Below, piece after piece: positions 289-61,326 of a stretch of 64,000 bases of DNA. Below the pieces are notes generated by a model. It did no database searches. It saw nothing but the letters and a program-made list of their open reading frames with translations, and was not told the origin of the DNA. Position numbers and translations under genes: made by a program. The stretch is taken from positions 124,001-188,000 of the IMG/VR virus record IMGVR_UViG_3300032323_001214; one strand, given 5' to 3'. The first letter of the stretch is position 1. The number at the start of each line of letters is the position of its first letter.

Positions 289-1133
289 GTACCGACATTG
301 CTAATCAAAAATCCAATCGCTATGCTACATTGAATTTAGTAAATTCGCAAGATATCACTGATCTTTTGCATTATGTACATAATGAAACACAATCTATAAA
401 ACCTGAAGGTGTAACAGTATTTGACTTTTATAGTATGGATGATTTGAACCATGCTGATAAATGGGACTATGAACACTTTGATTATAGAGTAAATCAATAT
501 GGCTTTAGGATGGAAGAGTTACCGAAAGAAGTAGATATTGCTGTATTCGGCTGTAGTTTTACCTTTGGTGTAGGTCTCCCCCCTCAATTTTTGTGGCATA
601 ACTTATTAGCAAAAGATTTAAATGTATCTTGCGCTAATTTTGGTATTGCAGGTGCCTCTGTCAAAACTATTATAGATGTATTTCTTATAGTATCTAAACA
701 TGTAAAGATTAAAAAAGCAATATTTTTATTTCCACCTTTTATGCGTTTTCAAGTGGCAAAGACAAACCTTCAAAATATTGTTAGTCATTTTGATGTTATA
801 CCGGGTCACAAATCACAGCTTTGTAAACGATATGGTATAGAAGGGGATATGGTTTACAAAACACTACCAAACGAAGAACTATTTAAGGTGGCAAAAGATT
901 CATTATATCTTGCAGAATATATTGCAAAAGATAGGAATATCGAAATTTTCTATAGTTGCTGGGAAGATGAATCTTGGTATTTTATCGAAAACATGAAATT
1001 TGAATATGCAAAATTGTTACCTAGATGGATGACGCCGGATGATTGTCAAGATGACTTAGCCAGAGATAAAATGCATCCAGGACCAAAGCATCATAATTAT
1101 TGGTTTTTATCAATTAACAGATTTTTAAAATGA
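285..1133 (+). CDS. SGNH/GDSL-like hydrolase or acyltransferase
   Basis: Block I-like AVFGCSFTFGVG, NFGIAGAS and C-terminal DKMHPG (DxxH). Confidence 0.55.
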   Translation: MSTDIANQKSNRYATLNLVNSQDITDLLHYVHNETQSIKPEGVTVFDFYSMDDLNHADKWDYEHFDYRVNQYGFRMEELPKEVDIAVFGCSFTFGVGLPPQFLWHNLLAKDLNVSCANFGIAGASVKTIIDVFLIVSKHVKIKKAIFLFPPFMRFQVAKTNLQNIVSHFDVIPGHKSQLCKRYGIEGDMVYKTLPNEELFKVAKDSLYLAEYIAKDRNIEIFYSCWEDESWYFIENMKFEYAKLLPRWMTPDDCQDDLARDKMHPGPKHHNYWFLSINRFLK

Positions 1134-2636: not shown

Positions 2637-5600
2637 ATGTTAAGAGATGTATTTTATTACGGTTTAAAACCAAACGCACACCCAAGAGAAAAACATGCCA
2701 TTGATTTAGCTGATGCTAGACAGCAATGTACTACCGAACATTTTTGGATAATCAATGAACATTGTGACTATAAACATTTTGATTGGGACTGGAGCTTTGA
2801 TTTTTTGCCAGATGAAGATGTCTGGGCAGAAGAACACAACAATGTCTGGCCTAGTCAATATCAGAAAGATAGTGGCACCTGGCTATGTTCAAAAGAATAC
2901 AGTGAAATAATAATTTATCGAGCCGATGTAGATCCAGTACCATTAAAAGATGAGATACTATCTAATTGGAAAATTATAGAATATATTGAAAAAAATAAAT
3001 TCGACTTCAAGTGGCATCCTGACCCAAGCGATCCCCCATATGTATATGTTTTTGGTAATCAGTGGTATCCTGGTACAGTTATGCCTACTGTTGAGTATCA
3101 CGTTAAAGGTGCTACATCACGTAAATACATAACAGAAAATATAGCGCACTTGTTACCTATACCTAAATTATTCAACATACTGCACGAAGTAGAATCATTT
3201 GATTATAGTTGGCGTCCTGACCCAACAAGTCCCCCTTACATATATGTATTTGGTAATACTCAATATCCTGCAAGTGTGATGCCTACAATAGAATTTCACG
3301 TAGAAGGTGCAACCGAACGTAAATTTATTGAAAATATAAAACCAAAACTAGTACAGCATCCTCAAGATTTTACTATACTTGATGATATCGATCCTGATAG
3401 CTTTGACTTCAGTTGGGTTCCTGATCCAAATGCGCCCCCATATATTTACGTATGGGGCAATCAATGGAATAAACCTGAAGACAAGGCAAGTATACAATAT
3501 GCAGTAGAAGGTGCAACTGAATATAAGTATATGGAAAAGCGAGTTAAACGCAAGCCTTCAATGACAAATTGGACAATCCCACATCAGGTAGTACGACAGA
3601 GTTTTGATTTTAGTTGGGAACCAAATCCTAACGACCCTCCATATTTGTATCAATTTGGTTCGCAATGGCAAAAGACAGGTGGACCTATTTTTACTGCACC
3701 TGGATGTAATACGGATACTGAAATCAAATATATTAATGTCATTAGCAGTAAACGAATTCCTGATGTTGAAAATAAAAATTGGAAAACGTTGTTACCTATA
3801 GCAAAATTTGATTATAGCTGGCACCCTGACAGCACAGAAGAACCATACATCTATGTTTTTGGTAATCAGTGGAATAGTGCTGAGTTAGAACCAACTATAG
3901 AGTATCGTGTACCTGGTGCAACACAGAAAAAATATGTTCATGATGTTGTAGCAGAAGTAGCTGCATATGAAGAGGGTTGGGAACTGATAGAAGAAATTCA
4001 CACCTTTGATTTTAGCTGGAGACCTAATCCAACTGATCCTCCCTACATATATGTGTTTGGTACTACTCAGTATCCCGGAACAATAATGCCATCAGTAAAA
4101 CTACATAAAGCTGGCGCAACACAAGAAAAGTTTATAGACGATATTGTAGCAAAACTTGTACAGAAACCTGAGTTATTTAAGAATACTGAGTTGATTAAAG
4201 AGTTTGATTATTCATGGAGACCGAATCCTAAGGATCCCCCATTCGTGTATCAGTTTGGTACACAATGGGCTAAAACACATGGTCCACAATTTACGGTAGA
4301 GGGGGCACTTGAGCACAAGTTTATTAGTGAACCTGTTGCTACTATTTTACCTGACATGTCTTATTGGGAAATTCCTAAAGATGTAGATACAACTAAGTTT
4401 GACTTTAGTTGGCACCCTGATAGTACTAGCCCTCCCTACATATATCAGTTTGGTACTATACTTGATGAAGATGATGGTCCTAAATATATTGTACCCGGCA
4501 ATACTGGTATAATTGTTAAACTTGAACGTCCAGAGATTATTCTTTCTGAATTAGATTTTCCTAAGTACTACTTAAAAACAACACTAGAAGATTTGATTGA
4601 AGAACACGAAGGTGAGATATTTTGGGCATTGAATCCAGAACTTGATTATTCTAATTTTGACTTCAAGTGGGTTCCAGATAAACAAAATGTTTATCACGTA
4701 AACGCATTTGGTAGTAAAGATAACATCAACACTCAAACTTACTTTGTTAACGGTAAGATGTGGCAGCGTGGATACAAAGATATAAACTACATCGAGGATA
4801 AAACAATTGATATTAGAACTAAAATTGATATGTTCTTTGTTGATAGAGGTAACAGCGAATCCAATGAGAGATTTGAAAAACTAAAAGAAAAACATAGTAA
4901 TATAATTAAGACACGATATTTAAATAGTTGGGTTGATACCATTAACCGTTGTATTAAAAAATCAAACACTAATTTATGTTGGATACTGAATAGTGAATTA
5001 GATTATAGTGAATTTGAATTTGATTTTTATCCTAGCCCATGGCAAATGAGACATGTGCATGTATTTGGTACTCAGTGGAGTCACTGGGGTACAACATTTA
5101 TGGTTAATAAAAACTCATTTGCAGATGATACCAAATATATCAAAATCATTGAGCATTTGAGCAACTTGAATTTTGTTAAGAGAAGAACGGCAAAAGCATC
5201 TAATTGTCTGTATAATATTTACGTGATAGATCATAAAAACAGTCACACACCAGATGTTGTAAAGCAGTTAGAAAGTAAAGCTACTGGTAAACAAGTAACT
5301 GTAGTTAAGTATGATACTAGCTATCTAAAAACATTTAAGGAAATTTTAAGATCATGTGAGAACAAAAACGAACATTATATTTGGGTTTGTGCAAGTGTGT
5401 GTGATTATGAAAATTTTGATTTTACATATGTGTGCGATCCGTTTGCAAAAGAGCAGTTGCATGTGTTCCCTAGTGATAAGCAAAAGTTTGGAGATACCTT
5501 TTTAATCGATGTTAATAAACTACGTGATTTGATTTCTAACATGTCAATGTTAGAAGACTATGAAAAAATAAATTATAATCAACATCAACGAGCTAAAAGA

Positions 5601-6569
5601 TTACCTGCTCCTAAAATTACAAGTTTAGATGATACTCACGTTAAAGATGCTAGCCAGCAGTTTGACTTCCCCTATGCAATACTTACAACACATGACAATA
5701 CTAATTTACAGGAAGTTGACCATGAACCAATGAGTTTATGGACTCCGGACAGTAAAAACTTAATTATCACCAGTACTGGTGCAACGAGAGTAGTAGTTCC
5801 TCAAGAAGCAAAGAACTATATAGAACGTGAGTTATATGATTACCCATATATAACTAGTTCTAGTAAACTTGCAAAATCTAAGCCACTGGATATAGTCTTC
5901 CTAAGCAACGGTGAAACTGGTGCTGACGAGAACTATGAACACTTACTAAAAGTGACTAAAGGATTATCCAATCGTGTTGTAAGAGTTGATGGAGTTAACG
6001 GTCGTGTTCAAGCCTACCATGCAGCGGCAGAAGCAAGCGAAACACCATGGATGTTTACTGTTTTTGCTAAGTTGCGTATAGATGATAAATTTGATTTTTC
6101 ATGGCAACCCGACAGATTGCAGGTATCAAAACATTATATTTTCAACGCAACTAATCCAGTCAATGGTTTAGTATACGGTCATCAAGCTATGATTGCTTAT
6201 AACAAAAAAATAGTGTTATCTAATAGTGGCAAGGGACTAGACTTCACGTTGGATGATGAGCACGAAGTTGTTGATATTAATTCAGGAATTGCAGTATACA
6301 ACACGGATGAATATATTACATGGAGAACTGCTTTTAGAGAGGCATTGAAATTAAAAAACACTATAGTCAAAAATCCAAATGACAATGCTTCTATTAGCCG
6401 TTTAATGACATGGTCTACCAAAGGTGACGGAAATTATGGGGAATACAGCGTAAAGGGTGCGTTGGATGCGATTGAATACTATGACGAAGTTAACGGTGAC
6501 ATGGATAAACTTAAATTGAGTTACGAATGGGCATGGCTCAAAGATAAATTTTCCTCATCGACTAAATAA
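2637..6569 (+). CDS. 1310-aa repeat protein with several glycosyltransferase-like (GT-A-derived) domains
   Basis: Eight tandem FD(F/Y)xWxP(D/N)...P(Y/F)xYxFG repeats, then three to four degenerate GT-A-like units; the last begins DIVFLSNGETGADENYEHL. Confidence 0.6.
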   Translation: MLRDVFYYGLKPNAHPREKHAIDLADARQQCTTEHFWIINEHCDYKHFDWDWSFDFLPDEDVWAEEHNNVWPSQYQKDSGTWLCSKEYSEIIIYRADVDPVPLKDEILSNWKIIEYIEKNKFDFKWHPDPSDPPYVYVFGNQWYPGTVMPTVEYHVKGATSRKYITENIAHLLPIPKLFNILHEVESFDYSWRPDPTSPPYIYVFGNTQYPASVMPTIEFHVEGATERKFIENIKPKLVQHPQDFTILDDIDPDSFDFSWVPDPNAPPYIYVWGNQWNKPEDKASIQYAVEGATEYKYMEKRVKRKPSMTNWTIPHQVVRQSFDFSWEPNPNDPPYLYQFGSQWQKTGGPIFTAPGCNTDTEIKYINVISSKRIPDVENKNWKTLLPIAKFDYSWHPDSTEEPYIYVFGNQWNSAELEPTIEYRVPGATQKKYVHDVVAEVAAYEEGWELIEEIHTFDFSWRPNPTDPPYIYVFGTTQYPGTIMPSVKLHKAGATQEKFIDDIVAKLVQKPELFKNTELIKEFDYSWRPNPKDPPFVYQFGTQWAKTHGPQFTVEGALEHKFISEPVATILPDMSYWEIPKDVDTTKFDFSWHPDSTSPPYIYQFGTILDEDDGPKYIVPGNTGIIVKLERPEIILSELDFPKYYLKTTLEDLIEEHEGEIFWALNPELDYSNFDFKWVPDKQNVYHVNAFGSKDNINTQTYFVNGKMWQRGYKDINYIEDKTIDIRTKIDMFFVDRGNSESNERFEKLKEKHSNIIKTRYLNSWVDTINRCIKKSNTNLCWILNSELDYSEFEFDFYPSPWQMRHVHVFGTQWSHWGTTFMVNKNSFADDTKYIKIIEHLSNLNFVKRRTAKASNCLYNIYVIDHKNSHTPDVVKQLESKATGKQVTVVKYDTSYLKTFKEILRSCENKNEHYIWVCASVCDYENFDFTYVCDPFAKEQLHVFPSDKQKFGDTFLIDVNKLRDLISNMSMLEDYEKINYNQHQRAKRLPAPKITSLDDTHVKDASQQFDFPYAILTTHDNTNLQEVDHEPMSLWTPDSKNLIITSTGATRVVVPQEAKNYIERELYDYPYITSSSKLAKSKPLDIVFLSNGETGADENYEHLLKVTKGLSNRVVRVDGVNGRVQAYHAAAEASETPWMFTVFAKLRIDDKFDFSWQPDRLQVSKHYIFNATNPVNGLVYGHQAMIAYNKKIVLSNSGKGLDFTLDDEHEVVDINSGIAVYNTDEYITWRTAFREALKLKNTIVKNPNDNASISRLMTWSTKGDGNYGEYSVKGALDAIEYYDEVNGDMDKLKLSYEWAWLKDKFSSSTK

Positions 6570-6592: not shown

Positions 6593-7276
6593 ATGATAAA
6601 AAATATAGCAATTGCACTTACCGTAGCTGTCATGACAGTCGGGTGTGCCACCAACAATGATTACAAGTTATATGCTGAAACACAGCAAAAAATTGCACAC
6701 GCTCATGCCATGGCTGAGACTGCAAGATATGCTGCTCTCGCAGAAATTGCCAAAACCGCTGATCCCGGTGCACGGGTTGCTGCCGTTATGAGCATTAATT
6801 TTGGATCACAGTCTGGAAACAGCCCTAGACTTAACCAAGTTGCTGCCCCGAAAACATTAGGTGACACTGCCCTACAATGGACTAGCGTGTTGTTGCCAAG
6901 TTTAACACAATTTTACGGTATCAGTGCTAACCGTCAAGTTGCTATTACACAAAGCAACAATCAAGCAGCCATAGCACAGAGTACAAATGCAACATTTGCC
7001 ACAATGAACAGCAATATGGCAAAATCTAATACTGACATTGCTACCGCTGGATTTACGGCTGTAACCAATGTAGCTAACACAGGTATTGCACAAGTAGGAG
7101 CAACTGCGGCGGCTGGATTGACTGCGGTTACCACAGTAAATGCTAATAGCAACACTGCTATTACCAACGTAGCTAATGCGGCTAATAACAGTATTAAAGC
7201 AGTTGCGGATATTATTCCTTTGTTGCAACCAAATGTAACCACAACTACTACGAATAATAACACTGTGGCACCATAA
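6593..7276 (+). CDS. Ala/Thr/Asn-rich predicted lipoprotein
   Basis: GGAG Shine-Dalgarno before ATG 6593; signal peptide with lipobox TVGC. Confidence 0.7.
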   Translation: MIKNIAIALTVAVMTVGCATNNDYKLYAETQQKIAHAHAMAETARYAALAEIAKTADPGARVAAVMSINFGSQSGNSPRLNQVAAPKTLGDTALQWTSVLLPSLTQFYGISANRQVAITQSNNQAAIAQSTNATFATMNSNMAKSNTDIATAGFTAVTNVANTGIAQVGATAAAGLTAVTTVNANSNTAITNVANAANNSIKAVADIIPLLQPNVTTTTTNNNTVAP

Positions 7277-7290
7277 TATACCCAAAATAG

Positions 7291-7319
7291 TTGTAATCAA
7301 CTATGTGTTATAATATAAT
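7291..7319 (+). promoter_or_regulatory. sigma70-type promoter for the tmRNA locus
   Basis: TTGTAA-N17-TATAAT. Confidence 0.7.
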
Positions 7320-7325
7320 GTAAGT

Positions 7326-7390
7326 TAAGACTGTATGAAGTAGACAGAAAAGGATTCAAGACGCGGGGGCAGTGCCCGCCAGGTCCACCA
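7326..7390 (+). ncRNA. ssrA: Permuted tmRNA, acceptor piece (T-arm, 3' acceptor strand, encoded CCA); 5' end approximate
   Basis: GACGCGGGGGCAGTGCCCGCCAGGTCCACCA. CAGGTCC pairs with GGGCCTG at 7764 with a G3.U70 pair and A73; GATTCAA pairs with TTGGGTC; GACTGT pairs with ACAGTC. Confidence 0.9.
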
Positions 7391-7402
7391 TAAGGAAATT
7401 TG

Positions 7403-7762
7403 ATGCGTATTAAAGAACTAACCGAGAGTGTGAATATTCCTAGTGTGTTGTATCACGCTACGTACCGTCCATTGCTGAAAAGTATTAGGCAACACGGTTT
7501 AGGCGGAGATAAGGCCCAGGCTAAATGGGAAGATAGCAAGCCCGGTGTAGTCTATCTTGCGTTAGATCCTAACGTTGCGGAAAGTTACGCTGAAACAAGC
7601 GAAGCGGTACCCGACGAATGGTTAGATGAAATCATTATATTGAAGATTTCAACTGCTGGATTGGATCTATCTAAACTCAAGGTAGATGCTAATGTTCTTG
7701 ACAACGAAGGTGATACATTGGAGTATCACGGAGTAATACCCACTAAATTAGTTTCTTTATAA
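7403..7762 (+). CDS. ADP-ribosyltransferase-fold protein (Tpt1/KptA NAD-binding-lobe-like) inside the tmRNA intervening segment
   Basis: AAGGA Shine-Dalgarno directly after CCA; LYHAT..L.SI...GL, VYLA.D...A..YA, IILKI and EYHGVIP match the KptA C-lobe pattern. Confidence 0.65.
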   Translation: MRIKELTESVNIPSVLYHATYRPLLKSIRQHGLGGDKAQAKWEDSKPGVVYLALDPNVAESYAETSEAVPDEWLDEIIILKISTAGLDLSKLKVDANVLDNEGDTLEYHGVIPTKLVSL

Positions 7763-7763
7763 T

Positions 7764-7945
7764 GGGCCTGACACAGGATCGATTGGGTCAAGAGTACGGA
7801 AATGGACAGTCCGGCAATGTAGAAGCCGTTAGGATTGGGGTTACCCGGTCGAAGACACGCAAAAAGTAATCGCAAACGATTCACAATTCCTTCAAGCCGT
7901 TAACGCTTGATAGCGAGGGTGGTACCCTTGTCAAAGAATAACCCA
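7764..7945 (+). ncRNA. ssrA: Permuted tmRNA, coding piece (5' acceptor strand, pk1 region, tag ANDSQFLQAVNA); 3' end approximate
   Basis: GGGCCTGACACAGGATCGA start; resume context AAAAAGTAATC-GCA-AAC-GAT (E. coli AAAAAATAGTC-GCA-AAC-GAC); tag frame 7872-7910 ends TGA TAG. Confidence 0.88.
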
Positions 7946-7969
7946 AATAGGAGTGTACGCTCCTATTTG
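7944..7969. terminator. Hairpin between convergent tmRNA and endonuclease transcripts
   Basis: Perfect 10-bp stem CAAATAGGAG-tgtacg-CTCCTATTTG overlapping the endonuclease stop codon. Confidence 0.55.
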
Positions 7970-8628
7970 TTTGGGTATTCATATGTCCATGTTCCATCAG
8001 GCAAATATTTTCTTTTTCTACCAGTGACCGTCGCTGATTGTTTTCCTGCACTTTTCTTTCCATTCTCAGCCGCAGTTGGATTCGGCAAGCCCTTATTCCA
8101 GGCAGTACGCCCTTTTAATGATTCTCGCAGTTTTAAGTTTGATTTACCCAAAGATTTTTTACCACTACGCACCCCGTTACATTTATGCCCGCATACAAAT
8201 TCTTCTCTTATAGGATGATGACAAAATTCTAATCTAATAAAAACACCATTACAAATGACACATGTATAAGTTCGTTCTTCTTTTGGTTTAGTTTTTGCTT
8301 TTCGATTATATTCAGCTAAATCCTCTCGTTTAGATCCAGACATCGAAAACTTGGACATTGACTTCTGATAATGCCTGTTAAGTAAAAGTGGGTTACCCCA
8401 ATGGTCTTTTATGAGGTTATTTTCAAATTCAAACGCTGATATTTGGTCAACAAAATATGCTAGAATTTCAGAATCATATTCTGAAAAATTGTTTTTAACA
8501 TGCTTAGATGAAGTAAAATAGCAAATACCAAGGTCTTGCTCGGCCACTACTGTATTAGCTGACCTCATTCCTATATAAAATTTTCCTGTCGTGCGATGCT
8601 TCATGATGTAAACATATGGTAAAAACAT
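7963..8628 (-). CDS. Free-standing GIY-YIG (Seg-like) homing endonuclease
   Basis: PYVYIMKHRTTGKFYIGMR..YFTSS..E...I; basic AWNKGLP tail; own ATAAATA promoter (8645-8651, minus strand) and AAGGA Shine-Dalgarno. Confidence 0.85.
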   Translation of the reverse strand: MFLPYVYIMKHRTTGKFYIGMRSANTVVAEQDLGICYFTSSKHVKNNFSEYDSEILAYFVDQISAFEFENNLIKDHWGNPLLLNRHYQKSMSKFSMSGSKREDLAEYNRKAKTKPKEERTYTCVICNGVFIRLEFCHHPIREEFVCGHKCNGVRSGKKSLGKSNLKLRESLKGRTAWNKGLPNPTAAENGKKSAGKQSATVTGRKRKYLPDGTWTYEYPNK

Positions 8629-8769: not shown

Positions 8770-8820
8770 AATTCTTGAAGTAAATACTTGTGTAATACTA
8801 ACACACAAGGAGACTATTAC

Positions 8821-9828
8821 ATGAAAAAACTAACAGCACTATTAGGTGCATTGTTAATATCAACTGTTGCATTCAGTGCAGACATAACAGGTGCAGGTGC
8901 TACCTTCCCATTCCCAATCTATGCCAAGTGGGCAGAAGCCTACAAGAAAGAAACTGGCATTGGGCTTAACTATCAATCAATTGGATCATCCGGCGGCATT
9001 CGTCAAATCAATGCTCGCACAGTGACTTTTGGTGCTACAGACGCTCCAGTCAAGGGCGAAGACTTAGACAAGCAGGGACAGGTGCAGTTTCCTGCTATCA
9101 TCGGCGGAACAGTTCCTGTAGTAAACTTAGATGGTTTTAAACCAGGTGAACTACGCATCACTGGACCAGTTATGGCAGAAGTGTTCTTGGGCACGATCAA
9201 TCGTTGGAATGATCCTAAACTAACAGCATTAAATCCTGGCAAAGCATTGCCAAACGCAGAAATCACAGTGGTGCACCGCGCTGATGGAAGTGGTACAACA
9301 TTTAACTGGACAGACTATCTTGCCACAGTCAGCCCCGAATGGTTACAACGTGCAGGTCGTGGTGCTACAATTAAATGGCCAGCTGCTAGTTCAGTAGGCG
9401 GCAAAGGCAACGAAGGTGTTGCTGCCAACGTGGCCAGAATCAAAGGTAGCATCGGTTATGTAGAGTATGCTTATGTTAAGAAAAACAATATGACTTTTCT
9501 ACAAATACAGAACAAAGCAGGTCGTTGGGTCAGTCCAGATGACTTGACATTTGCCGCAGCCGCTGACGGTGCTGATTGGTTCAGTGTTCCAGGTATGGGA
9601 TTGAGCATTGTGGATCAACGCAATCCCAATGCTTGGCCAGTGAGTTCTGCCAGTTTCATCATCATGTACAAGGATCCTGCTGACAAAAAAGCCAGTCAAG
9701 AAGTGTTGAAGTTTTTTGATTGGGCATTCCGCAACGGCAAGAAAGATGCTATTGATTTAGACTATGTACCATTGCCCGATGCATTGACACGCCAGATCCG
9801 TGAACGTGTTTGGACACAGATCAAATAA
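8821..9828 (+). CDS. pstS: Phosphate ABC transporter periplasmic binding protein PstS
   Basis: Signal peptide; ITGAGATFP.PIY.KW, YQSIGSSGGI, FGATDAP, HRADGSGTTF, GKGNEGVA, IGYVEYAY; GGAG Shine-Dalgarno before ATG 8821. Confidence 0.97.
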   Translation: MKKLTALLGALLISTVAFSADITGAGATFPFPIYAKWAEAYKKETGIGLNYQSIGSSGGIRQINARTVTFGATDAPVKGEDLDKQGQVQFPAIIGGTVPVVNLDGFKPGELRITGPVMAEVFLGTINRWNDPKLTALNPGKALPNAEITVVHRADGSGTTFNWTDYLATVSPEWLQRAGRGATIKWPAASSVGGKGNEGVAANVARIKGSIGYVEYAYVKKNNMTFLQIQNKAGRWVSPDDLTFAAAADGADWFSVPGMGLSIVDQRNPNAWPVSSASFIIMYKDPADKKASQEVLKFFDWAFRNGKKDAIDLDYVPLPDALTRQIRERVWTQIK

Positions 9829-59852: not shown

Positions 59853-59943
59853 ATAAATACATAATACACTCTTAATTCTGAGAGTTTATGCAGTACCCAC
59901 TGCGTAGCGGCTAGAACCCGCAATCTATATTAAGGAAAATCAA
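59853..59943 (+). promoter_or_regulatory. Late promoter plus three-hairpin 5' leader
   Basis: ATAAATA then ACTCT/AGAGT, TATGCAGT/ACTGCGTA and GCGG/CCGC stems ahead of an AAGGA Shine-Dalgarno. Confidence 0.55.
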
Positions 59944-61326
59944 ATGGGACGTCCTCTAAAAATCGCAAAGGCTCAAGCAGTCTTAACAATCACCGGCACT
60001 AATGCTACAACTGAAGAAGTAACTGTTTCACAAAATCTAACAACTTTGGGTGTCATCAAAGGTATGCCATTCGTCACAGCAAGTTCAACTGGTGGCCTAA
60101 TTGCTAACACAACTTACTGGATTTTAAATGTAACAGGTAATAGCACATTTACAGTATCGGCAACAGACTTAAGTGCAAACCCAACATACACTCCAGTTAA
60201 CTTATCCGGAACATCTGGTACATCAGTATCAGCCTCAGTCGGTGTTGTTGATGCTTATTTCAACAATCCAGTAGGTGGTGCAGGTTTCCCAGCAACTAAT
60301 GCTAATACTTATGGTGTAGTTGGTGGTAACACCGCAATCATTGGTAAACAAGTTCTATGTAACGTAGCATTTGGTCAAAATGGTACAGGTACAATTATTG
60401 CAGATACAGCAAGTGACATAGTAGTCGGTGTAGGTACTGACTTTGCAAACGTAGCGGCAGGTACAATTCTGTTTGCTGTATATGACGCCGGTGCTGGCCC
60501 AGCTACATTAGTTGGTACTACATCAGCAACCGGGGGTAATATAACTGTTGCTGTTGCTAACACGCAAAATACAGGTAACATCATTGGTACATCCGGTAAT
60601 GCTCAAACATTAGTAGAAGGTGGTCCAGTTACATTTAGTGCTAACTTAGGTGGCTTAGTGACAGGTACTCAATACTGGGTATTGAACGTTGCTAACGCAA
60701 GTGCATTCACTGTTTCTACTAGACCAGGTGGTGCTGAAGTTGATTTATCAAATGCAACAGGTACTCCAACTGCATCACAACAACAAGTTGTATTGACTGG
60801 TAATGCAGCAAATCCAGCAGTTGGTGTTACTAGTCAAGGTGACCCATTCGTTCAAGCATTACCAGAAGCAGGTTATATCGTTCGTCAGAAGGGTAAGACA
60901 AAGTACTTGGTAACAGGTGCAACTACAGGTATTACTGGTGCAGTATATACAGCTAACGTTGCTAACACTGCATTGACACCAAACACAATGTCTATCATTG
61001 GAACTAATGCGGCTTCAGGTACACAATATATTTCAAGTATCAATGATTACAACAGTGAAGTGTTCCCAGCAACAGTTGCTTCAGGTTCATTAAGTGCTGG
61101 TACTGTTTATACAATTTACAGTGCAGGTACTACAAACTGGACTTCAGTTGGTGCTATGGCTAACATGACAGGCATTACATTCACTGCAACTGGTACTGCT
61201 TCAGGTACAGGTCTTGCTGTATTGGCTAACGTCAATCCTGACATTATTGCTACATTCAACACAGCCGCTGTTGCGAATGCAGCTAATGGTCAGCCGAACC
61301 CAATCGTTACAATTAATGGCGTATAA
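59944..61326 (+). CDS. Virion structural protein with repeated GGL..T.YW(I/V)LNV...FTVS modules
   Basis: Two copies of the module; G/T/A/N-rich; late promoter. Confidence 0.7.
   Translation: MGRPLKIAKAQAVLTITGTNATTEEVTVSQNLTTLGVIKGMPFVTASSTGGLIANTTYWILNVTGNSTFTVSATDLSANPTYTPVNLSGTSGTSVSASVGVVDAYFNNPVGGAGFPATNANTYGVVGGNTAIIGKQVLCNVAFGQNGTGTIIADTASDIVVGVGTDFANVAAGTILFAVYDAGAGPATLVGTTSATGGNITVAVANTQNTGNIIGTSGNAQTLVEGGPVTFSANLGGLVTGTQYWVLNVANASAFTVSTRPGGAEVDLSNATGTPTASQQQVVLTGNAANPAVGVTSQGDPFVQALPEAGYIVRQKGKTKYLVTGATTGITGAVYTANVANTALTPNTMSIIGTNAASGTQYISSINDYNSEVFPATVASGSLSAGTVYTIYSAGTTNWTSVGAMANMTGITFTATGTASGTGLAVLANVNPDIIATFNTAAVANAANGQPNPIVTINGV

Follow-up and report, generated by a model that had tools for sequence, protein, structure and literature searches.

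A protein gene nested within the intervening segment of a permuted phage tmRNA gene

In Alphaproteobacteria, some Betaproteobacteria and Cyanobacteria, tmRNA is made in two pieces from a circularly permuted gene (Rfam RF01849, RF01850, RF01851 and RF04321). The acceptor piece, with its T-arm and encoded CCA, precedes the coding piece, which carries the tag reading frame after a pseudoknot; the two halves pair in an acceptor stem containing G3.U70. Between them lies an intervening sequence (IVS) that is removed by tRNA-type processing. In Caulobacter the permuted tmRNA is reportedly made from one precursor (Keiler, Shapiro and Williams 2000). Cellular IVSs are described as short and non-coding: a 2025 database paper covering about 12,000 permuted genes singles out only a tRNA-Ala and a repeat element inside them (PMC11915505). 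Two-piece tmRNAs are also encoded by phages, among them Methylophilales phage Melnitz and pelagimyophages (PMC9004378). Why phages carry tmRNA is unresolved.

Here we describe a phage permuted tmRNA gene whose IVS is 373 nt long and holds a protein gene with its own Shine-Dalgarno sequence and stop codon. The locus lies in a window of 64,000 nucleotides (positions 124,001 to 188,000 of IMG/VR record IMGVR_UViG_3300032323_001214), part of a 249.6-kb viral contig. The contig encodes a large terminase, a tail sheath, a DnaB-type helicase and virion proteins, so it belongs to a jumbo myovirus, which is uncultured. An initial sequence-only reading had identified the two tmRNA halves and the 119-aa open reading frame (ORF) between them, and had inferred that one transcript is both pre-tmRNA and mRNA, so that tmRNA maturation would excise the message and couple ribosome rescue to expression of an effector. 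When we checked that observation against the sequence, it proved correct at every coordinate (Table 1). The interpretation placed on it is supported only in part, as described below.

Table 1. Features of the permuted tmRNA locus and its surroundings, in window coordinates
Position	Strand	Feature
7291-7319	+	Sigma-70-type promoter-like site, TTGTAA, 17 nt, TATAAT; would start transcription at about 7326-7329, at the 5' end of the acceptor piece
7329-7390	+	Acceptor piece, the 3' half of the tRNA-like domain
7329-7334 and 7806-7811	+	Helix, GACTGT with ACAGTC
7353-7359 and 7783-7789	+	Helix, GATTCAA with TTGGGTC
7363-7379	+	T-arm; 5-pair stem 7363-7367/7375-7379, 7-nt T-loop GGCAGTG 7368-7374
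7380-7386	+	Acceptor 3' strand, CAGGTCC
7387	+	Discriminator A
7388-7390	+	CCA
7391-7763	+	IVS, 373 nt, inferred to be absent from mature tmRNA
7391-7399	+	5' strand of the IVS closing stem, TAAGGAAAT; pairs with 7751-7759, allowing G.U
7392-7396	+	Shine-Dalgarno sequence AAGGA, starting 2 nt after CCA
7401-7750	+	Interior of the IVS, the exchangeable cargo
7403-7762	+	ORF of 119 aa, ATG at 7403, stop TAA at 7760-7762; predicted small ADP-ribosyltransferase-fold protein
7751-7763	+	3' strand of the closing stem, GTTTCTTTA (7751-7759), read as V-S-L, then TAAT: the stop codon and the single base before G1
7764-7932	+	Coding piece, including the pseudoknot region
7764-7770	+	Acceptor 5' strand, GGGCCTG, G1 at 7764; seven pairs with the 3' strand, including G3 (7766).U (7384)
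7872-7910	+	Tag reading frame, ANDSQFLQAVNA, then stop TGA at 7908-7910; resume codon GCA at 7872
7915-7932	+	3' hairpin
7944-7969		Hairpin at the 3' end of the locus; likely terminator, shared with the convergent endonuclease gene
7963-8628	-	Free-standing homing endonuclease gene (221 aa), between the tmRNA and pstS

The identity of the tmRNA is well above chance. Lack of covariance-model support had been named in advance as grounds for rejecting it; instead, the Rfam model tmRNA_permuted (RF04321) matches 7329-7910 with 78.8 bits against a gathering score of 47 (E 2e-13 for the whole window on both strands) and treats the entire stretch between CCA and G1 as an insert. The alpha_tmRNA model gives a partial match of 35 bits, consistent with the alpha-like T-loop. 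ARAGORN reports no tmRNA in the window or in 11 related loci, presumably because of the long spacer, and is not informative for spacers of this length. The tag reading frame begins A-N-D like those of its relatives but ends V-N-A, where relatives end LAA or MAA, and the covariance-model score is among the lowest of the set we examined; some decay of tmRNA function cannot be excluded. A search with blastn of the locus against 50,697 phage records found no match, and tmRNA queries against isolates returned only T-arm matches, apart from hits to Melnitz and a roseophage.

Is the ORF a real gene? It has more than 236 homologues, in metagenomes and in Lak megaphages. Nei-Gojobori dN/dS is 0.117 against the nested copy in L353 (loci of other phage and metagenomic contigs are designated here by L and a number), 0.149 for L099 against L355, both nested copies, and 0.10-0.19 across all pairs for which it could be computed. 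In 49 aligned sequences H18 and Y51 are invariant and E107 is at least 90% conserved, an H..Y..E pattern, inferred from alignment alone, that is more typical of transferases. An open frame of 119 codons occurred in 0 of 1000 shuffles. We conclude that the IVS holds a selected protein gene.

The family assignment of the product is weak by sequence. Pfam PF01885 (Tpt1/KptA RNA 2'-phosphotransferase) gives 13.7 bits against a cut-off of 26 and NCBIfam 13.9 against 239; PHROGs and PADLOC gave no hit, and a single-sequence search of the PDB gave only noise-level hits. The evidence for its fold comes from an AlphaFold2 model of moderate confidence (pLDDT 76.6). The top 16 PDB hits of this model in Foldseek are Tpt1/KptA, with E values of 3.5e-4 to 5.5e-3 and TM scores of 0.53-0.60 on the query, followed by other ADP-ribosyltransferase folds. 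Among viral models the best matches are small phage proteins such as the 121-aa 'putative RNA 2'-phosphotransferase' of phage PaBG. A family profile aligns LYHATY with the LYHGT at the start of the Tpt1 C-lobe. The resemblance to Tpt1/KptA covers the predicted fold of the NAD-binding C-lobe and the H-x-T motif region. The protein is nonetheless not a Tpt1: it aligns only from profile position about 90 onward, is 119 aa long against about 180, and lacks the whole N-terminal RNA-binding lobe that carries the catalytic Arg/His residues. We refer to it as a mini ADP-ribosyltransferase-fold protein resembling, by prediction, the NAD-binding C-lobe of Tpt1/KptA.

The arrangement is not singular but one member of a large class with many unrelated cargo ORFs, widespread in aquatic phages. 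The same protein is nested in the same way in permuted tmRNAs of three further backbones: L007/L099 (65% identity; tmRNA 101.6 bits), L353/L354 (82% identity; 122.7 bits, with a TTCGACT T-loop) and L355 (66% identity; 96.7 bits). The acceptor stem covaries among the four backbones that carry this ORF, always keeping G3.U (CAGGTCC/GGGCCTG, CGCCTCC/GGGGGCG and CGGGTCC/GGGCCCG). In other phages the gene is free-standing. In L113 it sits in an ordinary operon, and in L111 it lies immediately upstream of the promoter of a permuted tmRNA whose spacer holds a different small ORF.

To ask how general such spacers are, we searched viral contigs for the 16-mer that joins the acceptor end to the Shine-Dalgarno sequence. 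Of the 99 stretches that matched, 46 are permuted tmRNA acceptor pieces, each with a single G1 partner 25-492 nt downstream. Detection of these partners required perfect acceptor pairing, so the counts are not independent proof of structure; the Rfam scores are, and Rfam confirmed all 19 loci scanned. About 30 distinct spacers hold unrelated ORFs, which include peptides of 12-84 aa, many of them hydrophobic, a 122-aa protein (L098) and a 144-aa HNH homing endonuclease (L053; phrog_655, E 7e-13). Of the 27 spacers of at least 90 nt, 23 are open from the Shine-Dalgarno-proximal start codon to the 3' end, against 1.1 expected from shuffles. Cargo families with two or more members show dN/dS of 0.07-0.26. 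In bacterial genomes there were at least 120 hits to the same 16-mer, and none of the 120 returned lay in a tmRNA context.

Two unbiased samples drawn on T-arm sequence alone gave 168 distinct phage permuted tmRNAs. The median spacer in the alpha-like sample is 79 nt. Spacers under 100 nt show no ORF excess and are non-coding hairpins, but 23 of 26 spacers of at least 140 nt are ORF-filled, against 2.4 expected; ORF-bearing spacers make up about 15% of those sampled. A Shine-Dalgarno sequence near the CCA goes with an ORF (8 of 9 against 3 of 39, p = 3.7e-6).

The sequence-only reading did not recognize that the Shine-Dalgarno sequence and the last three sense codons form a conserved closing stem. 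Across phage permuted tmRNAs the first nine or ten bases after CCA pair with the bases just before a conserved TGAT that precedes G1. In register, 8.85 of 10 positions pair, against 4.2-5.2 in shifted registers, with several pair types per position, and TGAT precedes G1 in 36 of 48 IVSs of an unbiased sample. In the ORF-bearing sub-family the 5' strand is the Shine-Dalgarno sequence, the 3' strand is read as V-S-L, and the TGA or TAA of the leader is the stop; GTTTCTTTA-TGAT or close variants end nearly all Shine-Dalgarno-type IVSs. This is why unrelated cargo proteins end in VSL. The V-S-L end does not by itself prove fusion to the stem, as the same ...ISL end occurs in the free-standing copy in L113; for this family the ending may be native and may have seeded the conserved flank. 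In the window, the minimum-free-energy fold of 7327-7970 keeps the T-arm, the acceptor stem and the closing stem stacked upon it (z = -4). The Shine-Dalgarno sequence would therefore be hidden in the precursor, and translation would need either opening of the stem or prior excision.

Phages with near-identical tmRNA halves carry different cargo at this site. L062 is 95% identical to the window over 7313-7400 and 87% identical over 7751-7876; similarity breaks at 7400/7401 and resumes at 7751. It has pstS directly downstream (84% amino acid identity), a shared synteny which shows that it is the same locus, but its spacer is 143 nt with a 38-aa ORF and it has no endonuclease gene. L407, from a 331-kb contig, has nearly the same tmRNA halves and a 101-aa ORF that shares only the first nine residues with the window's protein, encoded with synonymous differences. 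L039 has the same backbone and an 86-nt spacer without a clear ORF. L098 shares the upstream 1310-aa gene and carries the 122-aa ORF. Shared synteny was shown for L062 and L098 only. In a further case, L067 retains only the last 11 residues of the 64-aa ORF of L037. The gene between the tmRNA and pstS in the window, which we first guessed to be GIY-YIG, gave nothing in Pfam but matches phrog_314 'homing endonuclease' (E 1.2e-8), so we retain only the general name. Recombination between the conserved flanks, promoted by such endonucleases, is the likely route of exchange, although this is an inference.

The promoter-like site upstream of the acceptor piece matches at 10 of 12 positions and is the only + strand site of the sigma-70 type in 7150-8100. 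Similar TTGACA-17-TATACT sites sit at the same place in L098, L353 and L111. The hairpin beyond the coding piece was flagged as a terminator on the - strand only, but it also forms in the fold of the + strand transcript.

We propose, with fairly high confidence, that the locus is a permuted tmRNA gene whose IVS has been colonized by a real protein-coding gene. In this model one promoter makes a single precursor in which the two halves of the tRNA-like domain pair across the spacer. RNase P would cut before G1 and the 3' end would be trimmed back to CCA, yielding the two tmRNA pieces and releasing the 373-nt spacer as a minimal message, with its stop codon in the 4-nt leader directly before G1. 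The spacer would act as an exchangeable cargo slot. The RNA anatomy, the selection on the coding sequence, the recurrence of the arrangement, the covariation of the stem and the swapping of cargo rest on our computational analysis. The single transcript, the cleavage sites, charging with alanine, the translation of the message and its timing, and the function of the protein are inferred. With regard to the earlier interpretation, a genuine permuted tmRNA with an alpha-like T-loop, a selected gene in its spacer and a geometry conserved in other phages are supported by comparative evidence, and one precursor serving as both pre-tmRNA and mRNA is the most economical reading. Nothing in the data shows that the product is an effector or that ribosome rescue is functionally coupled to its expression.

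Could the tmRNA pieces and the ORF be independent transcription units that merely lie next to each other, with a promoter in the 3' part of the ORF driving the coding piece? Consensus promoter scans are insensitive, and phage middle or late promoters would be missed by ours. However, no + strand promoter-like site lies within 7320-7764, and the spacing between the Shine-Dalgarno sequence and CCA, and between the stop codon and G1, leaves no room for separate signals. The same exact geometry recurs with unrelated ORFs, and a covarying stem joins the two spacer ends. We consider this alternative unlikely. It is still less likely that the tmRNA is a relic inactivated by gene insertion, its halves persisting only as flanks. 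The VNA tag, the low covariance score and the negative ARAGORN result would fit such a view, but the nested arrangement is kept in four diverged backbones with compensatory acceptor-stem changes, relatives carrying cargo keep canonical tags, and the T-loop, CCA and resume-codon context are intact in the window. ORF-bearing spacers are also too many and too regular to be wreckage. Finally, the long spacer might be a structured non-coding RNA with an incidental ORF, as short spacers are hairpins and that of roseophage V10 is a GC-rich structure without an ORF. The dN/dS values, the invariant residues, the predicted fold and the occurrence of homologues as ordinary operon genes make this a remote possibility.

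A bolder reading is not excluded, but we regard it as tentative and more likely wrong than right. The spacer of phage permuted tmRNA genes may be a dedicated, exchangeable expression slot, in which the same tRNA-type cuts that make the two-piece tmRNA also release a minimal message. Because the Shine-Dalgarno sequence and the last codons are built into the processing stem, with the stop codon in the 4-nt leader beside it, cargo translation and tmRNA maturation would be mechanistically coupled: excision would free the Shine-Dalgarno sequence, or translating ribosomes would block folding of the tRNA-like domain. In variants with no stop before G1 (a family with 174-nt spacers, and Melnitz), the released message would be a built-in non-stop substrate of the very tmRNA it came from.

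That many phage tmRNA genes may also deliver a protein or peptide from their spacer changes what the locus should be thought to do. It gives a concrete, testable link between RNA processing and translation and points to a recombination hot spot with conserved built-in expression signals. It also exposes a class of small phage genes that gene callers and tmRNA finders both miss, since ARAGORN fails on long spacers and GenBank records annotate one tmRNA feature across the ORF. The cultured Melnitz/OM43 system, or the cloned locus in Caulobacter or E. coli, makes the question experimentally approachable.

How does the locus compare with described systems? Phage-encoded permuted tmRNAs such as that of Melnitz are likewise alpha-like, behind an early-type promoter and found in aquatic myoviruses. 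Melnitz itself has a 142-nt spacer with GGAGAAG, an ATG and an ORF that is conserved in the metagenomic contig L435, but its record annotates only a single tmRNA feature and the paper does not mention a spacer ORF (PMC9004378). Its glutamine riboswitch, which we suspected might occupy the spacer, lies downstream of the tmRNA. The window's cargo is three times longer and belongs to a recognizable protein family. We found no report of ORFs in tmRNA IVSs in full-text searches, which did not reach most subscription journals. A protein gene within a segment removed from the mature RNA, and an association with homing endonucleases, are also found in tmRNA genes interrupted by group I introns that carry homing endonuclease genes (36 of 883; PMC11915505). 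There, however, the segment is a self-splicing intron in the T-loop and the exons are religated; here the pieces would stay separate, no intron family matched in the window, the window's ORF is not an endonuclease, and the cargo elsewhere is mostly not one. Intervening sequences of bacterial 23S rRNA genes, closed by a stem and excised without religation, are reported to contain an ORF in some cases (Ralph and McClelland 1993), but these involve a different RNA, RNase III processing and one ORF family rather than a diverse swappable set. Lastly, in mitochondrial tRNA punctuation and in bacterial tRNA-tufB co-transcripts a message is liberated by RNase P and 3'-end processing of flanking tRNA-like structures. 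In the locus described here, both flanks are halves of one tRNA-like domain that must pair across the message.

In the window, wedged between the tmRNA and a pstS gene, is a free-standing homing endonuclease gene (phrog_314, E 1e-8), which is absent from the syntenic locus L062 and whose stop overlaps the shared hairpin at 7944-7969. The PstS-type phosphate-binding protein itself (PBP_like_2, E 1e-32) lies just downstream of the tmRNA, followed by a metallophosphoesterase, and is conserved in L062. The window also encodes a 1310-aa protein built of at least eight repeats of a motif like FDFSW-PDP-PPYIYVFG; a homologue lies upstream of the tmRNA in the related phage locus L098. Elsewhere in the window, a freshwater-2 RNA motif (RF02980, 61.9 bits) ends at the ATG of ORF 59944-61326 (460 aa, no PHROG match). 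The tag peptide ends ...AVNA, whereas close relatives end ...LAA or ...MAA; L062 has an unusually long tag of 28 residues.

Coordinates of features at the window and at other phage loci (L numbers)
Sequence	Coordinates	Strand	Feature
Window	2637-6569		1310-aa repeat protein
Window	7872-7910		Tag peptide
Window	7963-8628	-	Homing endonuclease gene
Window	8788-9828		PstS-type protein
Window	59869-59946		freshwater-2 RNA motif
L053 (also L068, L107)	5808-6239	-	Spacer-encoded HNH endonuclease
L407	1912-2253		Spacer with a 101-aa ORF
L111	1501-2222		Copy of the 119-aa gene upstream of tmRNA
L353	386-2301		Genes upstream of tmRNA
L101	1628-1670		Tandem repeats at spacer start
L045	120-579		GOLLD RNA upstream of permuted tmRNA
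L479	253-686		GOLLD RNA upstream of permuted tmRNA
L039	whole locus		tmRNA within tRNA array
L478 (Melnitz)	933-1074		Spacer with an ORF that reads past G1

Homing endonucleases are also found within the spacer: the 492-nt spacer of another permuted tmRNA, in L053, encodes a 144-aa HNH homing endonuclease (phrog_655, E 7e-13) that also ends in V-S-L. L407, a 331-kb contig, has nearly the same tmRNA halves as the window, and the first nine residues of its spacer ORF equal those of the window's protein but use different codons, while the rest is unrelated. This could be a recombination scar or a selected N-terminal module. In L111, a 306-kb contig, a 74%-identical copy of the 119-aa gene lies directly upstream of the promoter of a permuted tmRNA, rather than inside it, and that tmRNA's spacer holds a small membrane-type ORF instead. 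In L101 the spacer begins with three tandem copies of a 14-nt unit that contains the Shine-Dalgarno (TAAGGAAATATCCA), before a 61-aa ORF. Immediately upstream of the L353 tmRNA, with its nested ADP-ribosyltransferase-like gene, lie genes with NADAR, R2K ATP-grasp and Tad3 (anti-Thoeris) domains, which hints that the nested protein belongs to NAD/ADP-ribose counter-defence.

GOLLD RNA lies a few hundred bases to several kb upstream of the permuted tmRNA in one metagenomic phage and in Ruegeria phage V10, whose tmRNA is unannotated in GenBank. In L039 the tmRNA sits within an array of about 25 tRNA genes.

In one cargo family (L016, L023, L048, L055 and L083, with an intervening sequence of 174 nt) the leader before G1 is TGTT, not TGAT. 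The ORF therefore has no stop before G1 and runs 12-69 nt into the tmRNA, with a non-conserved tail. After an RNase P cut the message would lack a stop, making it a potential substrate of the tmRNA itself. The spacer ORF of phage Melnitz likewise reads 42 nt past G1.
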